Shown: positions 13,818 to 25,779, counted from the stretch's first letter. The stretch is 64,000 bases of DNA from Magallana gigas (GCF_963853765.1 NC_088860.1:32674001-32738000), one strand, 5' to 3'. Made by a program: numbers and translations. Notes: generated by a model not told the origin, from the sequence alone.

Positions 13818-16258
13818 TTAGCTCTCCTCTTCATTTTGCCTCTTAAGCCAATTTCCGTACTTAGTTTCGTGGTCTTCATTCGAGTCTTTGTCGATTTCTT
13901 TCATGATGACGTCAGCCAGCTTCCAATTTTGGTCTAAATATTTAAAAAAAAAACAGCCTCATAAAACTCTGTATAAATATTTCACAGTATATAATATAGA
14001 ACAAATAAATGAATTTCAAGGCTAGAGACTCACCATCATATTTGATACATCTACATTTATCTTGCATTTCTGCAGGGGTAGCTTTGGACTGTAAAATGGC
14101 GGTAATCTGGTCCACGAGTTGGTCCCGCTGTTCGTACATTCGCTGTTTTGATAGTCCTGCTATCATCGAGACGTTCATCTGAGACAATGCATTAATCGGC
14201 GTCAACATCTCCCCTGCGAAGTAATAGTCGCACGTCTCACCCTACAACAGATATTTTAGTTTTGTAAATTAAGGAGGTTGGCACCCGAAATAATAGTCAT
14301 CATGTCAATCACCCCAAAACCACGTAGACATTAAGACGGTGGGGGGGGGGGGGGGGTTAAAATGTTCATTTATTTTATTTGTGACCAATGTTACATGCCA
14401 TTTTTTTTTTGGAAATATAGGGCCCCAATCAGAAATGATAATTTTCCTGAAATTTTTGCCAAAATTTGACATAGAAATTGATAATTTTAAGAAATAAATT
14501 AAAATTTATAGTTTGAATTATTATTTAGTTATGATTTTAAGTAAAAGTTTAAAAATTCTTGCTTTACTTGTGGCTTCAAAGGCCAGTACATAATGAACAC
14601 AACAACAGATGCTACAAAGTTTTAGAGTAAATAAATTATAACGCAAATAAATTTTTTTATAGTAATGTCATCTTTCCAAAACTTTGCATACAAATAGACA
14701 TACGTTTGATGAATCATTTAAAAGTAAAACAAGAAGGGGTCACATCTCAAAAATTTGAGATATAAAGCATGAAATAAGCTAAATTTAGGCCAAAATTGGA
14801 GTTTTTTCTTAAAGCAATATGAGCTGCATTTTTCATGTTGAATTTTTTTTAACTAAAATGTTCTTTTCTACTAAAATGACAAAAATATCATGGTTTTTAA
14901 ATTTCTGTTAGCCATATTTTTGTGAAAAACGCCGTTAAGAAGCCTTTCTTGGAGCAAAATTGAATTATTGATTTGCAATAAATTCCTTAGAAGATAAATA
15001 TTTCCTTTGACAAAAATTAATGATTTTTTCAAACCTTATTAATCATAAAAGTTTAAGTTACATGCAGACTTATCATACTAGAAGGTTTTTGCAGCAAAAT
15101 AAAATTCTAAAAAATACAGCTCACATTGTTTTAATTTCTATGAAATATAAGGTAAATATGCAAAAATATATCAATAGAAATATCAAAATATTGTTTAAAT
15201 ATGTTTTAGAACATCATGAATATATCGTTATACACAAACTATCTAGAAGTTTGGTCTGCGCTGAAAATTAGGAAGCTCTAGTTATGAAAATTGTTTGTTT
15301 CCTTTTGAAAACATTACGCCACAAAATATAGTCCCTTATTAAAGTCTGTAAAAATGTAATTTTTTTCAAAACAATTTAATTCAATATAGTTTATCTGGCA
15401 TTGTAAAATTTAAATATACTACTAGAATTATTAATATGTGATGCAGAATTTTCAGAATAGAGGTGACCCAAAATGGCTACCCAAAACCTAAGGAGCGAAC
15501 CTCTTTAAGATAATTCGCATTCACCGAGTATTTTCTCCATGATTATGAAAAAAAAGGATGCGATTGATCTGACAGTTACATAGTACCATATATGATATGT
15601 GGTCTCAAAAATATTTATTAAATACCAAAAGTTGTGAATTTTGCTGCGTGTTAATTCACCAGATTAAATGTTCATTCGATTGCAATAGTTTGCATCAATT
15701 TGATAGAAGCGTTGGTCACTAATATAGGTATTCTTGAAACTCGTATGTGATTTTTACTACATACACGAAAATTGATACCCACGAATATCAACAACACCGC
15801 AGACTTAGTACAATTATAAGACTGTGATATTCTGATAACTAAAAAACAATAAAAACTCCTTAAAATTTTTTTTAATCTTCTAAAAGTTTTCACATTTTCT
15901 GTTTTTTATCAATAATGAAAAAAACAATTAGTAAGTTATTTACCTGTATTCTGTAAAGTTTGCACGAAAACACTTTCTTGGTGGCGTTCATTTGTTTCTC
16001 TATAGGTTTAATTTCCAAAGGGGGTTGTATTCTTTCATCTATCTCATGCAGTAACGGTTTAAAATTACAACTTTCGGGGACCAACTCTAGCAAGTGTTTT
16101 GAAACTTTAAATTCTCTACTTGCTGTGAGTTTCCTAATATCATCCTGTGCCATTCTATGTTGCAGGCGTTCGTTAAAATCTTTAAAAAAATTATAAACAT
16201 TAAGATTCCTGTTTCAAGTTATCATTGTACAAATTAAGGTTTTGCACAGTAAAAACAA

Positions 16259-16340
<82 letters not shown>

Positions 16341-19300
16341 CTTTAATTTTATACATACCTGGCAACACATGCCTTAGATAATTGACATGGAATGCCCAAG
16401 CTAATCCGAACGCTACATTACCTACTGGTACCTGGGATTTCAGAGATATTACATCACCTGGGAATCATTAAAAAAGAAAAACCTCTGAATCAATGCAATG
16501 TTGCTTTTCCCCTCCCCTACTATGACAATGTGATACTGTAACAAGATAAACGTCAAAAGGTTGCTTTCTAGATTATTTACGTCTATTATAAACAGTAAAT
16601 AAATTGTTTACACATAAAACTGGTATTTAAAAAATGAAAATTGTCACATATCACACCACATGTTGCTTTCTATATGTAGATTATTTACATCTATTATAAA
16701 CAGTAAATGAATTGTTTACACATAAAACTTGTATTTAAAAAATGAAAATTGTCACATATCACACCCATTCACATATCACACCACATGACATGTTGCATCA
16801 CAATCACATTAATAGTGAAAGCGACATACCCTTAATGATTTCAAATATCCGTTCTTCAAAGGATGGTTCGTTAACGATATCGATATACGTGACCCATTGA
16901 ATGAAGTTTGGAATATATGAGCTATCAACGTCCTTCAGTAAAATGACGATTTTTAAATGATTTTTCTCTATACACTTATTTAGAAGTGCTGCCAGCCAGA
17001 ATTCGATAAACCTTTTCTTCTTAATGGTGTTATTAGATATCAAGCAACAAACCCATCTCGCTTCTTTCACTCTTTCTTCTACCACATCTGAAATATCAAA
17101 TAATCAAAGTACTGAAACGAAATGACGCCTAAATAATACACTGACATGGCGGAAGCGCCATAGTCAAAGGGTGCTTCAAAAACACACTTAATTTTATTAT
17201 TTATAACACCAACATTATTGAAATTTCAAAACGGAATTAACCTGGTGAGTCGATGGGTGGTCGAGCAATTGAACAACGAATGTTTTTGTCTTCCAAGAAA
17301 CCCCGGATGCTATTGATAGTTTTGTTATCCGGGTTCTTACTGTGAGACATACTCTTGCTTTCATGCGCATCAGAGTCGCTGTAAAGAAAGCAGACATCCT
17401 TGGAATAAGCTGGTCTGTTAGGGTCATAAAGGCCAGGGGGCTTCTCACCCTGAAAATAAAAAAAAAAATGATGAGCAAGATCGCCACCAAGCGTAGCATT
17501 CACGCGCGACATAAATGAATAGGAAATGAAATAGCAAAATGATTTATGTGATCATGAATGAAAAACTGACGATTATCTTTCAATATTATTAGTAGTAGTT
17601 TAATGGCGTATACATTACATACATTGCCATAGCATACAATTTAACAGTACTTTACAATAATTGTGGGTACAGGTGGGAGGCAGGTTATATAAAAAGGTAT
17701 AAAGTGGATGAAAAAATATCAAAAAAGACCAACAAAGCAGTAGTTATATATAAACTTAATTTACGCTTATTATCCACAAGCTTTTGTACACTAAACCAAA
17801 CTTACACACAACTAACATGCAACACATGTACAGTGCCTATGTCCATTTTTACCTTTTGATCCAGTGCTCTTTATAACAATAAATCGCTTTATATTATAAT
17901 ACCCCTTTAACCAAATGTTTTAAGGAACAAAAACCATTTTAATCCCAAGCTCTGGTAACAAAAAACTGTTTTATCCCATCATCTATGCAACCTTTTCTTT
18001 TTACATTTACATGTTTATCATGAGGCCAAAATCAACCTATCAAAGTGGATGCTACGAGTGAATCCCCTCCGTATTAAGTTGTCCAAGAGGATGAATATCA
18101 TTTAATTTTAGGGGACCGGTTCTCGTTTTTGTGGATAGACCAGGAAATGATAATTTGTGAGGTTAATGAATTATTAGCAGGTTATGAAAAAATGTGAGTA
18201 AAATTTATTCATAGTGTACGGAAGACCGTTGACGCCACCTAAAAAATATATTATCTTTTTAGCGACCGCCACAAAGATTAGGTGCCGGTCTCAAGATAAA
18301 ATTGGAGTAATTTTTACTTGTAATTTTTATATGCGCGTGGTGTGAACATTTAAACAATAAAATGCTTTCTTTCGTGATTTATTCGGGATATGAAGGTAGC
18401 GACATTGCAGAAAAAATACATAACCCGTGTTAGCGGGTTATGTAAAAAAAATTCTGCAATGATCGCTATCTTCATAACCCGAATGAATCATCAAAGAACG
18501 CATTTTATTGTTTATATTAACATCTTTCTTTTAGCTTATTTATATGTAACTGATTATCAAAGTTAGTAAAATTCACTAAATTACTGTTAATCTATAAAAG
18601 TACGTTAGCTGAAAGAAACAGCAAAATCGTCTCTTGTAAGACTAAATTTCAGTCCAACATCATCATGATTATTTCATGCAGTCCGTGATCTTTATTAGGT
18701 CGCTATAGATTTTGACCAATCGCTAAACGGGGTGTCAAATTGAATTTCAGTCCTGTCACTTTCATGTCAGTTTCAGGCGCTGTAGATTTCGACCAATCGA
18801 TAAATGGGGCGTGTAGATTTTAGTCTGGCTGTTTCTATAGAGCTATAAATTAACTATAAGTTTCCGTAAGAAATAGAGGAAATAATATTTGGTAGATGTA
18901 AATATAATCATATGGACCCCTGCAGAGATTTATGCTATTGTTGCCAAAAACTTTTGGATTAAAAAATGCACAAGGGCTTAACTCGACAGAGGGTTAAAAT
19001 CATTTATCTTTTATATACATCAATAATATTGCAATATAAAAATGTTTGCCAAAATACGAAACATATTGATACTAGAGGTATGTTGCAAAAAAAATGGTTC
19101 ACTCTGTCACAGATCAAAGATATTTTTGGCCGTTGTTAGAACTACATGTATACTCTTGGTCGAAATAAAGAGATAAATTGAAAATGAAGTTCGGAGAGGT
19201 TTTTTTAAAAATCGATTCTGTTGACATAAGTCTATTGGGTGTTTTTTTCTTACTTAGATGACATATAGACTGAAATATTATCTAATTTTGATGGCAGATC

Positions 19301-22300
19301 TGGAAAGGAATCAAGAATTGTAACGATGAAGAAATTATAAGAATGAGAAATAGGAATAAAGTAGATATCTTTTTTCTATTTATAAAAAAAGGTTTTTGGA
19401 CTGTATTTTTTTTATGAGCAACAGTGCAACTTTGAAGTAATATTGCAGTCCTGAACTAACAATAAACCTATGCGCAAGCTGAAAAGAGGCCGAAATGGCG
19501 GCTGCCAAAACCGTATCAGCTGGCCGCCAAATTATTAAGTAGCGGCTGCCAAAATTATTTATTTTTTCACATGACACAACTGGTTTCCGTAAATAAGAAC
19601 TTTTTTGTTAAAATTTCTAATTACTAAGTATGCCGACGACACACTCAGGTATTCTCTCAGAAATATTCACTTGGATATTTAAAAGAATGAACTGAATATT
19701 TTTTGTAATATTATTAATAAAATTGAAAATGATTTTGATTAGAATAAACGAGAAATTAAAATGTTAAATACACTGGAGCTGTATTTACTAGTACCTTATA
19801 CCTCGTTAAAAAAGACAAAAGAGTATGCATCTAAAAAAAAAGCTACAGAAGCTGATAAACAAAGCTAATAAAACGTGCATTTACTTCACTTTTTCCTAAT
19901 ATTTAGATAACTTAGAGTAAATCTTCTAGTTATTAATTTACATGTGTATAATTTTATATCCATACCTGTTTCCTCTGTGAACATGTCAAATGTAAATATT
20001 TCATTGTAATTGTTTTTAAATTTCTGTGGAGATCTAGAATGTCAGAATAGAAGATCAATATACGGACTTTTCAATTATAATGATGATCAATTCATAATGC
20101 TACGTTCCCACTATCACGATTCGCGGCGCAATTGCAACCGCGGTCTTAAAAAGTATATAGTAATCGTATAGTAATCGCATCAAATCTCACAAGATCATTA
20201 GGTATGTCATGGCAATCGTGTTAATCATAGAACATTAATTTGTCTTACTGTCAAAAAATATATACCATCAACATAATTTTATTTCATTCGTAATAATTCG
20301 TTATCATCGTATCAGATCGCATTGCATCGTTACTAAGCGCAGCCCGTCGCATTTAATCGTGGCCCCCTCCTAATCGTATTAATTAATCTGGATCAATGTT
20401 GGAGTGACAAACACCACGCTGCGCTACGTTTAGTTAAGATGTACCACAATGGTCAGTCGGGCTAAATGGATATATTGTGGGGTCGAATTGTATCAAATCG
20501 TAATCATCTTCCATCTTGATCGTAAAAAAAAATCGCCATCATTATCATACGCCATCGCAACAAAGAACATCGGTTCGTGATGCACGTATCGTAACGTATA
20601 CGAACGTATTTGCACAAACACAAGCGTCCCTAATCGGAGACTCGTTTCGTGTTCAAAACAGATCAAGATCATATCGTGAATTCTCTCTAGACAATCTTAT
20701 CCAAACAAATTTTATTGTATCTAAACGAGCAATACGATCGTTACAGATGACGTCACCTGAAATGTGTCTGTCGTGCCCGCATCGTATTCAAGCTCAACAA
20801 ATCGCACAACGACTTATAGACTCGCATCACCTTTTACCTAACCTCCTTTTTAGAATTATAGAGAATTTGTAAGATAGTTACGATCTATTTGTCAATCAAT
20901 GTGTTCGTAACAGATCGCACGACAGTGGGAACTTAGCATAAACTTAAAAGAATCACCTTGTGTTTTAATATCTTTAGCTTCAAAACTCAGAATGTCTAGA
21001 ATTGATTTTTTTCCTTGATTCATGTAAAGCGTTATTAAACAAAAATTACGAGGAAACGTTTTAAACCAATATTCCGGTAAATTAATTTTGTTGTATATGT
21101 ACATTTCAATTCGCGTACGAATGTGAGATCTTACTAAAGGAAACGTGAACAAATCCTTCACAAAACAAGAGGCCAATAGGCCTTAACGGTCACCTGAGTA
21201 GCATATAACCCATACACAAACTTGTCGAGGAGTCTCATATATGCATTTATTTAGGTTTCATTCTGGAGTAGAAAAATTATAAATTTGTAATGACGACCAC
21301 CTCTCTGCCTAAAATCTTTTAAAAGAACTATGTAACCTAATATTTTGGCGAAAAACTTAAAGATCTGGTCTACAAAATCATGAATTCAGTTTTCCTTTCA
21401 GGTGTGTGGGAGTAAAGAAGATAAGAAGACAAGTACATTATACGCATTAACACATATACATCCATTTTGGCCCTGCCTTAGAGTCACATCCCATACTTCA
21501 GGGAACATTAAAATTTCAGTAGAGGACTTCCTGGTTAACATAATTATGAAGTCAGTTTTTCATACAGATGTGTGAAAATAGAGAGGAAGATTTTTAAACA
21601 TTATATGCCTTAACACTATATTGCCATATCCCCCCCCCCCCTCCATGTCCTGAACCCCTGACCCACGGGGCCATGAATTTCACAATTTAGGTAGAGGAGT
21701 TAGTGGACATCATAACCATGTATTCAATTTTTTTGCCCACTTGTGTGGTAGTAAAGAAGAAGATTTTTTAAGATTTAATACATTTTTACTATATGACCAT
21801 ATTGGCCCAAACCTGGAGCCTGAACCCTAACACAGGGGTCATAAATGTCACAATTTTGGTGGAAGACTTAAGGACATTATAACCAGGCATTTAGTTTTTA
21901 ACAAATATATATGGGAGTAGAGAAGAAGATTTTCTAAGATTTATTACAGCTTACCTATATGGCCATATTGGCCCCACCCTAGAGCCTGAACCCCTGACAC
22001 AGGGGTCATGAATTCCACAATTTTGGTAGAGGGCTTCACGGACATCATAATCATGCATTTAGTTTTTAACAAATATATATGGAAGTAGAAGATTTTCTAA
22101 GATTTAATACATGTTTACTATATGGCCATATTCGCCCCACCCTAGAGCCAGAACCCCTGACCCAGGGGCCATGATTTTCACAATTTTGTTAGAGGGCTTC
22201 ATGTCATGGACATCATAACCATGCAACCAGTTTTTTCTTCACATGTATGGGAGTAAAGAAGAAGATTTTTGAAAATTTTGCCTTTTTGGGCATATGTGGC

Positions 22301-25300
22301 CCCACTTGTGGTGCCCCAGGGGTGTTAGAGCCACGAATTTCACTATTTAGATTCCTCTTACCATAGAGATGCCTCACACCAAAAATGGTAACAATTAGCC
22401 TTGTAGTTTTTAAGAAGAAGTTAAAAATGTAAAATTGTTAACGCACAACGGACGACGCACGACGACGGATGAAAACAGATAGCAACCTAAAAATATAATC
22501 TAACGATTTTTTAAGTAATGAGTCAAACAATCAGTATAATGCTGCTTATCTAACTAGATAAATGTGTCCTCTATGAATTGCTTTTAATATCATTCGAGCA
22601 TCTATGATTTAGAACTTTAGATAACTGTTTTCTGTAAAATGAAACATATATGTACCTTAATAATTGTAGTTTCTTTTTTTTTCTTTTTTTTCAGTCTAAA
22701 CTTATTACTTGATGTATCTACATGTAACTTTTTTAATCTCTATAATGAACATGTTTATACGTCGTAATATTAAAAATCTAAAATTTGCAGTTTGTATCAA
22801 ATATCAACAATAGTGAATTGATCATACCACCGGTTTCAGAAAGGTTTCTTCTATAGCGCTCCGGACCCCTTTGAACAAAACTCTAGACGGAGTACTTTCC
22901 TCATCTTTCCCTTCGTCTAAAATGAAGGAACGATGATACAAATGAACAAACTTCCAAACAGTTGTACGAAAAGAATGTCCAAAATCTCGACTACCAGACA
23001 ATGCCTGTTATACTCATCTTGCTTACCGTCGAACACCAAGACTTTTGCTCTTCCGAAGCATTCCTGATTTCTTGTGTGGTTTAATAGTTCTTCTGTCTTG
23101 TATTTGAACCTTTCCACTTCCGTTCTTCGCTGAAGTGGAGTTAGAAGGTTCAGAACTTCGTCTGTTATCAAGCCGAGAGCACACAGGGCGCTTGGGTACT
23201 CAGCGCAGCAGAAATATTCCTAACGGAAAAGTATCAACCTTTTTATAATTATTAATTTATGGTGGGGGAGGGGGGGGGGGTTAAGCACTACCCACATTTC
23301 CTTTCAGAAAAAAATTAGGAACCTTTTCTTTTTTTATGGAGAATTTGTTCGAGTGGTTTGTTTTTTCTCTATTCTTCTCAGAGGTGTTTCTTGTGCTTTT
23401 ATGTTAGTAGGTCTATTATCAAATTAAAAGTAGATATTTTTTGGCATTGTTCATAAAAAAATCAAAAGGCAAATTACACACTGCCAGTTTGAAACCAATC
23501 TGTATGCAATATATTATCACATTAAAATTTTCTGAATCAATTTATCTTTCTTACCTCATCTTTGCCATTTTCGTTCTTCCCGTTGACCTTGTAAATGGTC
23601 GGTGTGTATTTACGGCCATTCATTTCGATCACAACTCTACCCATATTCTGAACGTTCGGGTCTATATCCGCTATGTCTCTTTGCCCCTTTGCGCTCAGCG
23701 GACAAAGCATGAAAAATACTGTGGACATTTTGCCGAGGTTGTTTTGGAATATATCCGATTTTTGTATATATTGAGCTAGAACTACAAAAAATAATAAATA
23801 AATAAAATCATATTTTGAAAGTACATGTAGTTTAAATTTTTAACATACATGTTATTCATCAAGTTATTTAACAAGAACGTAATTTTTATAGGAAATATAA
23901 AAAATACGAAAAAAAATTAAATTATTTTGTGATAGTATATGTACTTTTTATTTTTAACATAGCCTACATGTAATTCGTCAAGTTATTTAACAAGAACGTT
24001 AATTTTATAGAAAATATAAGAACTACGAGAAAAAAAATTAATCATATTGTGATAGTACAGTCATGGAGTTTTTATTCTTAACATCTTTTGTCAAAGTTAT
24101 TTAAAGAACAACATTTTTATGAAAAGCATAAATTGTCTAGTTATTTTTGTTGGTCTTCAAATTGATATAATTATTTAAATCCACCAAGTATTATTCCCTC
24201 TATTTCTTAGGAAAACTAATAGTTAATTCATAGCTCTATAGAAACAGCCAGACTGAAATCTACACGCTCCGTTTATCGATTGGTCGACATCTACGGCAGC
24301 TGAAACTGACAAGAAAGTGACAGGATTGAATTTGACACGCCCTGTTTATCGATTGGTCGAGACCTACAACTACCTAAGAAAGATCACGGACTGCACGAAC
24401 TAACCATGGTGATGTCAGACTAAAAGTCTCACTGGAGACGATTTGGCTGTTTCTTTTAGCTAACGTACTTATGTACAGTAACAGTAATTTAGTGAATTTT
24501 ACTTACTTTTTACGCTCAATTTATTAATTAGTTAAAATAAAGATGTTAATATAAACAATAAAATGCTCACTTTGGTGATTCATGTGGGTTATGAAGGTAG
24601 CGATCATAGCAGAAAAAAATTTACATAACCCACTAACGCGGGTTATGTATTTTTTCTGCAATGTCGCTACCTTCATATCCCAAATGAATCACCAAAGTGA
24701 ACATTTTATTGTTTAATTAAAACAGAAAGACAAGACAGTTAAAGTATATGACAAATGTACCTGGTAGAATATTCTTTAAATATCCAGCGAAGTGTGACCA
24801 TGCCATTCCCACGGCAAAGTTTCCGGCCGGGAGAAGCTGGTTTAAAGATACCTCTCCTGTATAAAGCACAAATAATTCAACAACTTTATTATTATATAAC
24901 TTACACCGAAAACAAACTCACTTTTGATCTCCGTCTTATCTCGCTTTGTAATATCCCTTTTGTAGAAATAAAAAAATAAGTAGAAGAGATGAAAAGTAGT
25001 GCTGGACCTCATGCAAGTATTCATACATTGGACAACAATAAAGAATTCGGGTTCAAAAGCCGTAAAACTTGGACGAGCTCACTTTTGATCTCATTCTCGC
25101 TTTTTTTTTTAATTGGAATATATGATGGTAAAGAATGATTTGAGATAAAAAAAAAAAAAAAAAAAAAAAAAAACCCACCACCATATTATTATTTTATAAA
25201 TTCGTCTAGGTGTTATTATAGTCAGTAACTGATTTTGCTGGAAATAACTCCTTAGATGGATACATAAAAAATGGAAGAATTATCCGGCAAGGTGTGATAA

Positions 25301-25779
25301 CACGTACGTTTCAAGGTCTTGCAAACCGTCTCCATGCAGCGTTCGTGATAATTGTCGACTAGAACCATTTGCGTGGCTTGTTGAAGGAAGGGAATTTCCG
25401 GCAGCTCTTGGACGGACATTCCATCTATCAGGAGAACCATGAGGGAGAGCCTTCCCGTCTGTAGACACTGTTCCAAAGCTAGATAGGTCTCCAGGGAAAA
25501 GTCAATGTTCTTAGCACTCTCTGATAGAATTAGAAGAGTTTTCTTACTGTTCTTTATAGCCTTTGCAATGTTTTTGTACTGATGTGCCGCCATGGGCGTT
25601 GAGATGGCAGGGCGAATGAATTTTAATTTTAATTGTTCAAAATTGGATAAAATGGTTTTCTCGATTCTATATGCATCCTCTGGCTTGAAAAAGATTGTGA
25701 CGTCACTGTCTTCCATATCCTTCTTCCATTGTGAATCCTCATCACTTGACTCATCACCCGGTGTCGGCGCTTCCGCCAT
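13818..25779 (-). CDS. Tandem TIR-STING-TIR-STING protein, ~733 aa, no transmembrane region. Exons (minus strand): 25779-25308, 24856-24761, 23781-23555, 23219-23027, 22916-22828, 17449-17242, 17087-16830, 16457-16359, 16179-15944, 14241-14034, 13933-13818
   Basis: Exon lengths 472+96+227+193+89+208+258+99+236+208+116 = 2202 nt, giving one open frame; every junction is GT-AG and phase-compatible. STING motifs occur twice: NFAVGMAWSHFAGYLKNILP / FFMLCPLS..DPNV / GRKYTPTIYKV / CAEYPSAL..RRTEVERF..TEELL, and GNVAFGLAWAFHVNYLRHVLP / LLELVPESC / KKVFSCKLYRI / AGEMLTPINAL..GLSKQRMYEQ. These parallel human STING [20 protein letters not shown] / LYILLPLDC / RVYSNSIY / LEYATPLQTL..GFSREDRLEQ. Each STING domain follows a TIR-like alternating strand/helix region. 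Minus-strand AATAAA at 13458-13453. Confidence 0.88.
14273..15504. mobile_element. Putative Kolobok-like non-autonomous element with TTAA target duplication, in TIR-STING intron 9
   Basis: TTAA at 14269-14272 and 15505-15508; short imperfect TIRs GGAGGTTGGCACC vs reverse complement AGAGGTTCGCTCC; very AT-rich interior. Confidence 0.5.
16262..16337. repeat. (CT)n microsatellite about 20 nt from the exon-8 donor of TIR-STING
   Basis: Direct dinucleotide run. Confidence 0.9.
16561..16765. repeat. ~100-bp tandem duplication in TIR-STING intron 7
   Basis: AGATTATTTAC.TCTATTATAAACAGTAAAT.AATTGTTTACACATAAAACT.GTATTTAAAAAATGAAAATTGTCACATATCACACC occurs twice. Confidence 0.85.
16830..17449 (-). other. 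TIR-like domain 2 (exons 6-7)
   Basis: YSKDVCFLYSDSD..IRGFLEDKNIRCSI..VKEARWVCCLISNN..KIVILLKDVDSSYIPNFIQWVTYID matches TIR box1, betaC and the P.FL...tyID end. Confidence 0.82.
18350..18856. mobile_element. ~500-bp hairpin-ended interspersed element, copy A (TIR-STING intron 5)
   Basis: ~80-bp imperfect hairpin centred on ACATAACCCG-TGTTAG-CGGGTTATGT (~18418-18443); the whole element is the reverse complement of 24220-24716. Confidence 0.8.
20098..20938. mobile_element. PIF/Harbinger-type (Tourist-like) MITE, 841 bp
   Basis: TIRs TGCTACGTTCCCACTATC / GACAGTGGGAACTTAGCA; TAA at both flanks (20095-20097, 20939-20941), matching the TWA target duplication of PIF/Harbinger. Confidence 0.75.
21164..22490 (+). 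mobile_element. Helentron/Helitron-N-like element carrying about four ~166-bp Cg170-type satellite monomers
   Basis: 5' AACAAGAGGCC..GGTCACCTGAGT; monomers CTGAACCCCTGACCCAGGGG.CATGAATTTCACAATTTTGGTAGAGG... starting near 21650, 21819, 21986 and 22149; GACGACG/GACGG simple tract at ~22441-22470. Confidence 0.8.
23840..24130. repeat. ~120-bp tandem repeat, about 2.5 copies, TIR-STING intron 2
   Basis: TTTTTAACATA..CATGT.ATTC.TCAAGTTATTTAACAAGAACGT...TTGTGATAGTA repeated. Confidence 0.75.
24220..24716. mobile_element. ~500-bp hairpin-ended interspersed element, copy B (TIR-STING intron 2), inverted relative to copy A
   Basis: TAGTTAATTCATAGCTCTATAGAAACAGCCAGACT... is the reverse complement of ...AGTCTGGCTGTTTCTATAGAGCTATAAATTAACTA; hairpin ACATAACCC-ACTAAC-GCGGGTTATGT near 24623-24649. 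A decayed third hairpin lies at ~26415-26520. Confidence 0.8.
25308..25710 (-). other. TIR-like domain 1 (single exon) of the TIR-STING tandem
   Basis: DSDVTIFFKPED..AIKNSKKTLLILSE..FSLETYLAL..LMVLLIDGMSVQELPEIPFL follows the TIR betaA, betaC-alphaC and betaD-DD-loop pattern. Confidence 0.75.

Follow-up and report, generated by a model that had tools for sequence, protein, structure and literature searches.

One chain, two unlike STING domains: a bivalve double TIR-STING with a candidate asymmetric ligand pocket

Every characterized STING is a symmetric homodimer, yet the ligands of these receptors are often asymmetric. A stretch of 64,000 nucleotides from the oyster Magallana (Crassostrea) gigas (GCF_963853765.1 NC_088860.1:32674001-32738000; hereafter the window, with positions counted from its first letter) carries on its minus strand a gene, LOC105344500, that encodes two TIR and two STING domains in one chain. 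An earlier note on this DNA had held that the two STING pockets have diverged at the positions contacting the ligand, and had offered two explanations: two ligand specificities in one receptor (AND/OR logic), or a single asymmetric composite pocket. The question raised by the locus is, in short, whether the protein serves two STING pockets or one pocket with unlike halves. We consider it rather probable that the two STING domains pair as a single-chain pseudo-heterodimer with one ligand pocket made of unlike halves.

Based on stop-to-stop translation, inspection of splice sites and assembly of the exons, the gene has 11 exons (Table 1), bounded without exception by GT..AG introns, and encodes 733 amino acids (aa) in the order TIR1-STING1-TIR2-STING2. 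The model is identical to XP_065924351.1 (our label P0045), which is annotated as "uncharacterized". TIR1 spans aa 1-157 and STING1 aa 158-~345; after a linker follow TIR2 (aa 360-514), STING2 (aa 515-~700) and a helical tail. Pfam recognizes TIR_2 on exons 1 and 7, each upstream of a STING_LBD match, and the same order exists in all orthologues. On single exons the STING_LBD family (PF15009) scored only 14-24 bits each, under the 27-bit cut-off, because the exons are fragments; on a 73% orthologue (P0002) it reached 173 bits in two stretches. Single exons being likewise too short to inform a search of the PDB, whole domains were taken from the mRNA-derived protein, and phmmer then gave E-values of 7e-15 for STING1 and 5e-12 for STING2, with all 75 matches being STINGs. 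The AlphaFold2 model has a predicted local distance difference test (pLDDT) score of ~85-93 across both STING domains, and Foldseek aligned them with human, anemone, coral and oyster STING chains, including ligand-bound ones, at template modeling (TM) scores of 0.78-0.87 (target-normalized); by these two programs the STING alpha+beta fold is present in both domains. The N terminus is a TIR domain, and neither an N-terminal helix bundle nor four transmembrane helices were recognized by Pfam or in the secondary structure of the AlphaFold2 model, which has a TIR-like alternation of strands and helices there. As read from the translation, the 38-residue tail after STING2 lacks the pLxIS motif for TBK1/IRF3.

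The six motifs quoted for the pockets are present in frame on the minus strand at the places that the earlier note had given (Table 1), and its limits coincide with exon boundaries, exon 2 beginning at 24856 and exon 10 ending at 14034; its author must therefore have built the same gene model. The human numbering, which had been aligned by hand, was upheld by HMMER alignments to solved STINGs. Against human STING (7mhc), STING2 reads W161, A162, F163, H164, V165, N166, Y167, Q232, K238, V239, F240, E260, T263 and P264; against oyster 6wt6 and coral STINGs, STING1 reads S162, H163, F164, A165, G166, Y167, R238, K239, Y240, E260, S263 and A264, and the same alignments give it a lid about six residues shorter and devoid of an R232 equivalent. 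To the differences already listed in the note are thus added Y163F and R232Q in STING2 and the shortened lid of STING1. The base-stacking Tyr167 and Glu260 are kept in both domains (Y183 and E272 in STING1, Y541 and E637 in STING2), and the GxxxS dimerization motif is kept in STING1, with GxxxA in STING2. The phosphate-binding arginines are incomplete: R238 corresponds to R246 in STING1 and to K616 in STING2, and R232 is absent from both (the short lid in the one, Q610 in the other). The missing R232 lowers confidence in canonical ligand binding, not in membership of the fold family.

Within LOC105344500 alone, STING1 and STING2 are identical at three of the 15 quoted positions, which matches their overall identity of about 23-25%, so the divergence at contact positions within this one protein is no more than chance. 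A signal beyond chance emerges across the family, where fixed differences lie in the pocket. Double TIR-STINGs of 693-739 aa were found in a second Crassostrea species, C. virginica, C. angulata, Saccostrea (two paralogues), Pinctada (two), Mizuhopecten, Mytilus (two) and Tegillarca, and a 1422-aa protein of the scallop Ylistrum has four STING domains. We compared 13 STING1-type and 13 STING2-type domains from oysters, pearl oysters, scallops, mussels and an ark clam over 161 alignable columns. Only five columns are fixed in each type yet different between the types: human positions 163 (H in the STING1 type, F in the STING2 type), 166 (G and N), 257 (C and F), 259 (A and G) and 264 (A and P). 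Three of the five are among the 15 positions quoted earlier (hypergeometric P = 0.006), and the two segments that line the pocket, human 158-168 and 257-267, contain all five (P = 3e-5, for segments chosen post hoc). The residues of the alpha1 dimer interface (P, G, G, A, W, Y, L, L and P) are the same in both types.

The same picture emerges within each type. H163 and G166 were found in 13/13 STING1-type domains of the 26-domain tree alignment and in 14/14 of a second alignment (A1), in which the W, S, H and G of the alpha1 motif are invariant (14/14); Pro at human 262 is also invariant in this type. N166 and P264 were found in 13/13 STING2-type domains of the tree alignment and in 14/14 of alignment A2, where N166 and Y167 are invariant together (14/14). 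At position 238, by comparison, eight of the 13 STING2-type domains have Arg, and Lys is a variation of Crassostrea and Pinctada.

A maximum-likelihood tree separated the STING1 and STING2 types on one branch (support 100/98) with mirror-image subtrees, and placed the Ylistrum 1422-aa protein as a duplication of the entire two-domain unit. A homology search with the STING2 region of the protein P0018 returned double proteins only, and, for want of a single-STING protein as outgroup, the alpha1 exons of the other STING loci were read from the genome. Exact-signature scans and six-frame searches of the 564-Mb genome revealed six double loci: C8:32.69 Mb (this gene), C3:10.35, C8:11.81, C8:11.85, C9:47.72 and C9:47.89 Mb. 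In all six, an N166-type domain lies ~6-8 kb 3' of a STING1-type domain, with both on one strand. For five of them the reading includes the W-S-H/G166 alpha1 of the upstream domain, and C8:11.85 Mb yielded only the pocket strand of that domain, A-E-Y-P-A-V. These scans detected no orphan STING1-type or STING2-type domain in the 564 Mb. Three other STING loci have a canonical, symmetric-style alpha1 (W-G-Y-Y-Y-G-Y or W-S-F-Y-F-G-Y), namely one single TIR-STING (C8:43.87 Mb), whose alpha1 is identical to that of 6wt6, and two more. The five further double loci include two tandem gene pairs; stops occur in some of their open frames, and some of these copies may be pseudogenes. Leu replaces Tyr167 in the STING1-type domain at C8:11.81 Mb and both C9 loci. 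In the STING2-type domain, Gln or Leu replaces Glu260 at C8:11.81, C8:11.85, C9:47.72 and C9:47.89.

In the AlphaFold DB, R7T8P6, an 873-aa TIR-domain protein, aligned with residues 12-730 of our model (TM 0.60 by query, 18% identity), and the list of matches also contains R7T7C2 (444 aa). We take R7T8P6 to be an entry of the annelid Capitella teleta. On this structural match, double TIR-STINGs may predate the bivalves.

STING ligand-binding domains are constitutive dimers with alpha1 at the interface and the ligand between the two domains (PMC9343627), and the human pocket is lined by residues 162-167, 238-242 and 260-267, each base stacking on one copy of Tyr167 (PMC11173896). Because the ligand sits at a two-domain interface, one STING domain is half a pocket, and two pockets would therefore require STING1-STING1 and STING2-STING2 dimerization between chains. 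By this argument the first option of the earlier note, two pockets with AND/OR logic, is weakened, and its second, one asymmetric composite pocket, is the better supported. Pairing of the unlike domains is favored because the partner is tethered in the same chain and shares the conserved interface, because the two types are never separated, because the fixed differences lie on the floor and wall of the pocket, and because a fixed arrangement agrees with the AlphaFold2 models. Over STING1-TIR2-STING2 the full-length model aligned at TM 0.77 (hit-normalized) with an independent AlphaFold DB model, that of a relative of 532 aa and 25% identity, so that all three domains would be in a like relative position, and over TIR1-STING1-TIR2 it aligned at TM 0.78 with the model of a 513-aa relative. 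Among these predictions, the match of 0.77 is a stronger argument for a fixed arrangement than the predicted TM scores of AlphaFold2 itself.

The soluble TIR1-STING1-TIR2-STING2 protein would then be one chain equivalent to a STING homodimer, with STING1 and STING2 meeting in the canonical dimer geometry either within the chain or by a swap between chains. One half of the pocket would consist of S162, H163, G166, Y167, R238, Y240, E260, S263 and A264 of STING1 under a short lid, and the other of A162, F163, N166, Y167, Q232, K238, F240, E260, T263 and P264 of STING2 under a full-length lid. Such a pocket would presumably hold a cyclic dinucleotide in fixed orientation, the particular dinucleotide being conjectural as well, and the signal would pass to two differing TIR domains. 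Since the G166E change of human STING is believed to imitate a phosphate of the ligand and to engage R238 (PMC9343627), the invariant Asn of the STING2 type at human 166 may, by analogy, be in a good position for contact with the ligand or the lid.

Several points weigh against the composite pocket. The predicted TM scores (0.64 for the full length and 0.68 for STING1-TIR2-STING2) are compatible with packing but are weak evidence, being attainable with just two domains rigidly placed, and the canonical STING-dimer geometry of the predicted STING1-STING2 arrangement is one that we infer from models. The co-occurrence of the two types and their mirrored trees are automatic for one gene, and exclude fission, not homotypic pairing. 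Each domain keeps Y167, R/K238 and E260, so the chemistry of this orthologue group would allow homotypic pockets; Arg is missing at human 232 from both halves, and the ligand may differ from the canonical ligands of STING. A search of the literature found no binding data for any double TIR-STING. An ESMFold2 prediction of the STING1 and STING2 complex (score 0.00, pLDDT 30-42, chains unfolded) gave no evidence either way.

The principal alternative is that chains pair in parallel and like with like, forming two different symmetric pockets for two cyclic dinucleotides with AND/OR logic. It would agree with the precedent that all characterized STING domains are homodimers (PMC9343627), with the retention of the stacking Tyr167, a basic residue at 238 and E260 in each type, and with the type-specific conserved pocket signatures, which are what two specificities would give; oysters also have many cGAS-like receptors (cGLRs), of which at least one makes an unusual product, 2'3'-cyclic UMP-AMP (2'3'-cUA) (PMC9980059). 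However, the tethered partner is at very high local concentration and presents the same alpha1 interface residues, no gene in the genome has only one of the two types, and the Leu in place of Tyr167 at C8:11.81 Mb and on C9 would leave a STING1-STING1 pocket there without its stacking tyrosine. The single-chain AlphaFold models moreover repeat a fixed intrachain arrangement, as far as predictions can tell. We hold like-with-like pairing to be unlikely.

One half might instead be a structural partner only, a scaffold or regulator whose differences reflect relaxed ligand constraint and the upkeep of an interface. Either half could be named for this role: STING2 lacks S162, G166, R232 and Y240 and has K rather than R at 238 in Crassostrea and Pinctada, and STING1 has a truncated lid and neither T263 nor P264. 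However, the substituted residues are fixed and not drifting (N166 and P264 in the STING2 type, H163 and G166 in the STING1 type), neither half has lost Y167 or E260 in this orthologue group, and the ratio of nonsynonymous to synonymous substitutions (dN/dS) is low in both STING domains. By the Nei-Gojobori method against an 89% orthologue (dS about 0.34), dN/dS is 0.14 for TIR1, 0.09 for STING1, 0.65 for the linker, 0.17 for TIR2 and 0.14 for STING2, and among orthologues as distant as those of scallop and mussel no part of the protein is better conserved than the STING domains. Both STING domains are under purifying selection; the neutral evolution of one domain, which the earlier note had named as speaking against its own claim, was not seen, and a decaying second domain was rejected on the same values. 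A merely structural role for one half is, in our estimate, distinctly improbable.

That two neighboring TIR-STING genes were wrongly merged and no tandem receptor exists is hardly credible: parallel intron phases (1, 1, 0, 1) in both modules, as in duplicated genes, the 5.4-kb intron between the modules and an in-frame stop if the exon-5 donor is left unspliced would all suit it, but the in-frame junction 22828-17449 is present in mRNA contigs of two species and in poly(A) reads or a contig from three runs, and proteins of 713-739 aa are annotated in at least nine bivalve species. The contigs are L001 (3069 nt, from an RNA assembly of M. gigas), which matches all eleven modeled exons including the join of exons 5 and 6, and L002 (2433 nt, from the 89%-identical orthologue), which splices at the same eleven-exon sites. 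The junction that fuses the modules, from 22828 to 17449, spans the 5.4-kb intron in frame (phase 0 to phase 0); two 2026 runs have it in raw poly(A) reads and an independent 2021 run has it in a contig (17448/9-22827/8, with CT..AC on the plus strand). The 154-nt TIR2 intron (17088-17241) is supported by 13 raw reads, and RNA runs of several studies contain roughly one half of the words in a stretch of which exons make up about the same share. With the junction in mRNA contigs and raw reads, two neighboring genes are excluded as the main product; a minor short isoform is conceivable.

Some variation was observed around this junction. One contig and one raw read have an alternative module junction, 17452-22828, with six extra letters; it would add 9 nt, or 3 aa, and agrees with the annotated 736-aa isoform X1. 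If the exon-5 donor GTG/GTATGA (22825-22830) is left unspliced, a stop follows two codons on, giving a protein of TIR1-STING1 only; read depth just 3' of the donor is 0-1 against ~3 on the exon, the sampled reads being too thin to quantify retention. Within intron 5, interspersed or tandem repeats at 21000-22600 have very high RNA and contig depth, with many back or skip joints and loose ends, and these reads evidently come from many genomic copies elsewhere and not from this gene.

The asymmetry of the STING domains has a parallel in the TIR domains. E97 of TIR1 (25489-25491, in the motif F-S-L-E) corresponds to a Glu that members of the family retain almost without exception, within F/W-x-x-L-E. 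The matching position of TIR2 (aa ~437) is Glu in M. gigas and, in the alignment, varies in relatives. The catalytic-type Glu of TIR effectors that cleave NAD (NADases such as bacterial TIR-STING and SARM1) is thus nearly invariant in TIR1 and variable in TIR2, an enzyme role being putative, and the two TIR domains are non-equivalent too.

As for the ligand, human STING, which is symmetric, binds the asymmetric 2'3'-cyclic GMP-AMP (2'3'-cGAMP), and a structure of the symmetric coral Sp-STING1 with 2'3'-cUA (8gjz) is among the Foldseek matches. Because symmetric STINGs bind such ligands, asymmetry of the receptor is not required for an asymmetric ligand. Oyster cGLR1 makes 2'3'-cUA on sensing double-stranded DNA, and the receptors analyzed in the available part of that paper are coral STINGs only (PMC9980059). 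This product makes an asymmetric pocket attractive, and the link to a mixed-linkage or purine-pyrimidine ligand is a conjecture. Taken as a whole, it is possible, though on balance doubtful, that the double TIR-STINGs of oysters, pearl oysters, scallops, mussels, the ark clam and possibly annelids are ancient single-chain heterodimeric STINGs that receive an asymmetric ligand, such as 2'3'-cUA, in one orientation only and couple it to non-equivalent TIR domains, of which just one keeps a conserved catalytic-type Glu.

The features of the gene are collected in Table 1. The four upstream exons of contig L001 probably represent a 5' untranslated region, as 25779 is the Met with which orthologues begin; some assembled proteins (758 aa) gain from them an in-frame extension of 25 aa. 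Many public assemblies contain a 175-aa product (25252-25779; the cluster of P0001, with 49 members), in which exon 1 continues past its donor into intron 1, and which probably stems from genomic or unspliced contigs rather than from a genuine short protein. A (GA)n/(CT)n microsatellite in intron 8 (16237-16340), directly 3' of the exon for STING2 alpha1, yields spurious E-R-E-R frames and chance Pfam matches.

Table 1. Exons and pocket motifs of the double TIR-STING gene LOC105344500, in window coordinates
Feature	Position	Strand	Amino acids	Human STING positions	Content and support
Four upstream exons, same transcript	33807-33738, 31595-31415, 31005-30909, 30595-30458	-			Contig L001 alignment
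Exon 1	25308..25779	-	1-157		Start codon (25779) and TIR1; Pfam TIR_2; contig L001 aligned 25796-25307
Exon 2	24761..24856	-	158-189		STING1 helix alpha1; W-S-H-F-A-G-Y; Pfam STING_LBD positions 1-21
Exon 3	23555..23781	-	190-265		STING1 core and shortened lid; R-K-Y; model and mRNA contig
Exon 4	23027..23219	-	266-329		STING1 pocket strand and C-terminal helices; E-Y-P-S-A
Exon 5	22828..22916	-	330-359		STING1 end and linker; donor GTG/GTATGA joins module 1 to module 2
Exon 6	17242..17449	-	360-428		Linker and TIR2 first part; mRNA contig, raw reads
Exon 7	16830..17087	-	429-514		TIR2 second part; Pfam TIR_2
Exon 8	16359..16457	-	515-547		STING2 helix alpha1; W-A-F-H-V-N-Y
Exon 9	15944..16179	-	548-626		STING2 core and full-length lid; Q at human 232, K-V-F
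Exon 10	14034..14241	-	627-695		STING2 pocket strand and helices; E-M-L-T-P
Exon 11	13818..13933	-	696-733		C-terminal helical tail and stop codon (13818-13820)
STING1 W-S-H-F-A-G-Y	24800-24780	-	177-183	161-167	
STING1 R-K-Y	23614-23606	-	246-248	238-240	
STING1 E-Y-P-S-A	23201-23187	-	272-276	260-264	
STING2 W-A-F-H-V-N-Y	16398-16378	-	535-541	161-167	
STING2 K-V-F	15976-15968	-	616-618	238-240	
STING2 E-M-L-T-P	14211-14197	-	637-641	260-264	

A class of oyster "novel STINGs" that have two domains each of STING and TIR has been listed by architecture only (PMC11103948). LOC105344500 belongs to this class, and its architecture was therefore already known. In the literature that we searched, no account appeared of two ancient domain types, of fixed differences concentrated in the pocket or of a single-chain heterodimer, the nearest being that architectural mention. 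If the reading of the whole family as heterodimeric receptors of an asymmetric ligand is right, these proteins would be the first natural STINGs whose heterodimeric pocket is built in, and candidate receptors for the orphan oyster signal; a composite pocket would, more generally, make a concrete receptor candidate for the expanded cGLR signals of bivalves. Pocket halves that are unlike, separately encoded and long kept would also show how specificity and ligand orientation can be set one half at a time, and single-chain STING sensors could be engineered on their template. The hypothesis is directly testable.

Among the known systems close to it is the oyster single TIR-STING (6WT6 in the apo form, 6WT7 with 2'3'-cGAMP), which shares with LOC105344500 a soluble N-terminal TIR domain joined to a STING domain with no transmembrane segment. 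6WT6 is the best PDB match for STING1 (E 7e-15), ties with 8ydn for STING2 (both 5e-12) and is the top fold match. However, the 6WT6 protein is one module with the canonical alpha1 W-G-Y-Y-Y-G-Y and with R232 and R238, whereas LOC105344500 has two modules ~25% identical, with non-canonical half-pockets, no R232 and one short lid. With the canonical transmembrane STINGs (human TMEM173 and those of anemone, coral and oyster) it shares the ligand-binding fold and, in both domains, W161, Y167 and E260. It differs from them in having neither transmembrane helices nor pLxIS, and in that the presumed halves of its pocket are different sequences in one chain and not the two copies of a homodimer.

Bacterial TIR-STING is an effector of CBASS (the antiphage signaling system based on cyclic oligonucleotides), forming a filament with NADase activity that is triggered by cyclic di-GMP (c-di-GMP). 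Like it, LOC105344500 combines TIR and STING in one soluble protein and has a Glu at F/W-x-x-L-E in TIR1 (E97). This situation is different in TIR2, where the matching Glu is not conserved across the double TIR-STING family. Domain shuffling gave rise to the TIR-STING fusions of animals, independently of those in bacteria (PMC10732462).

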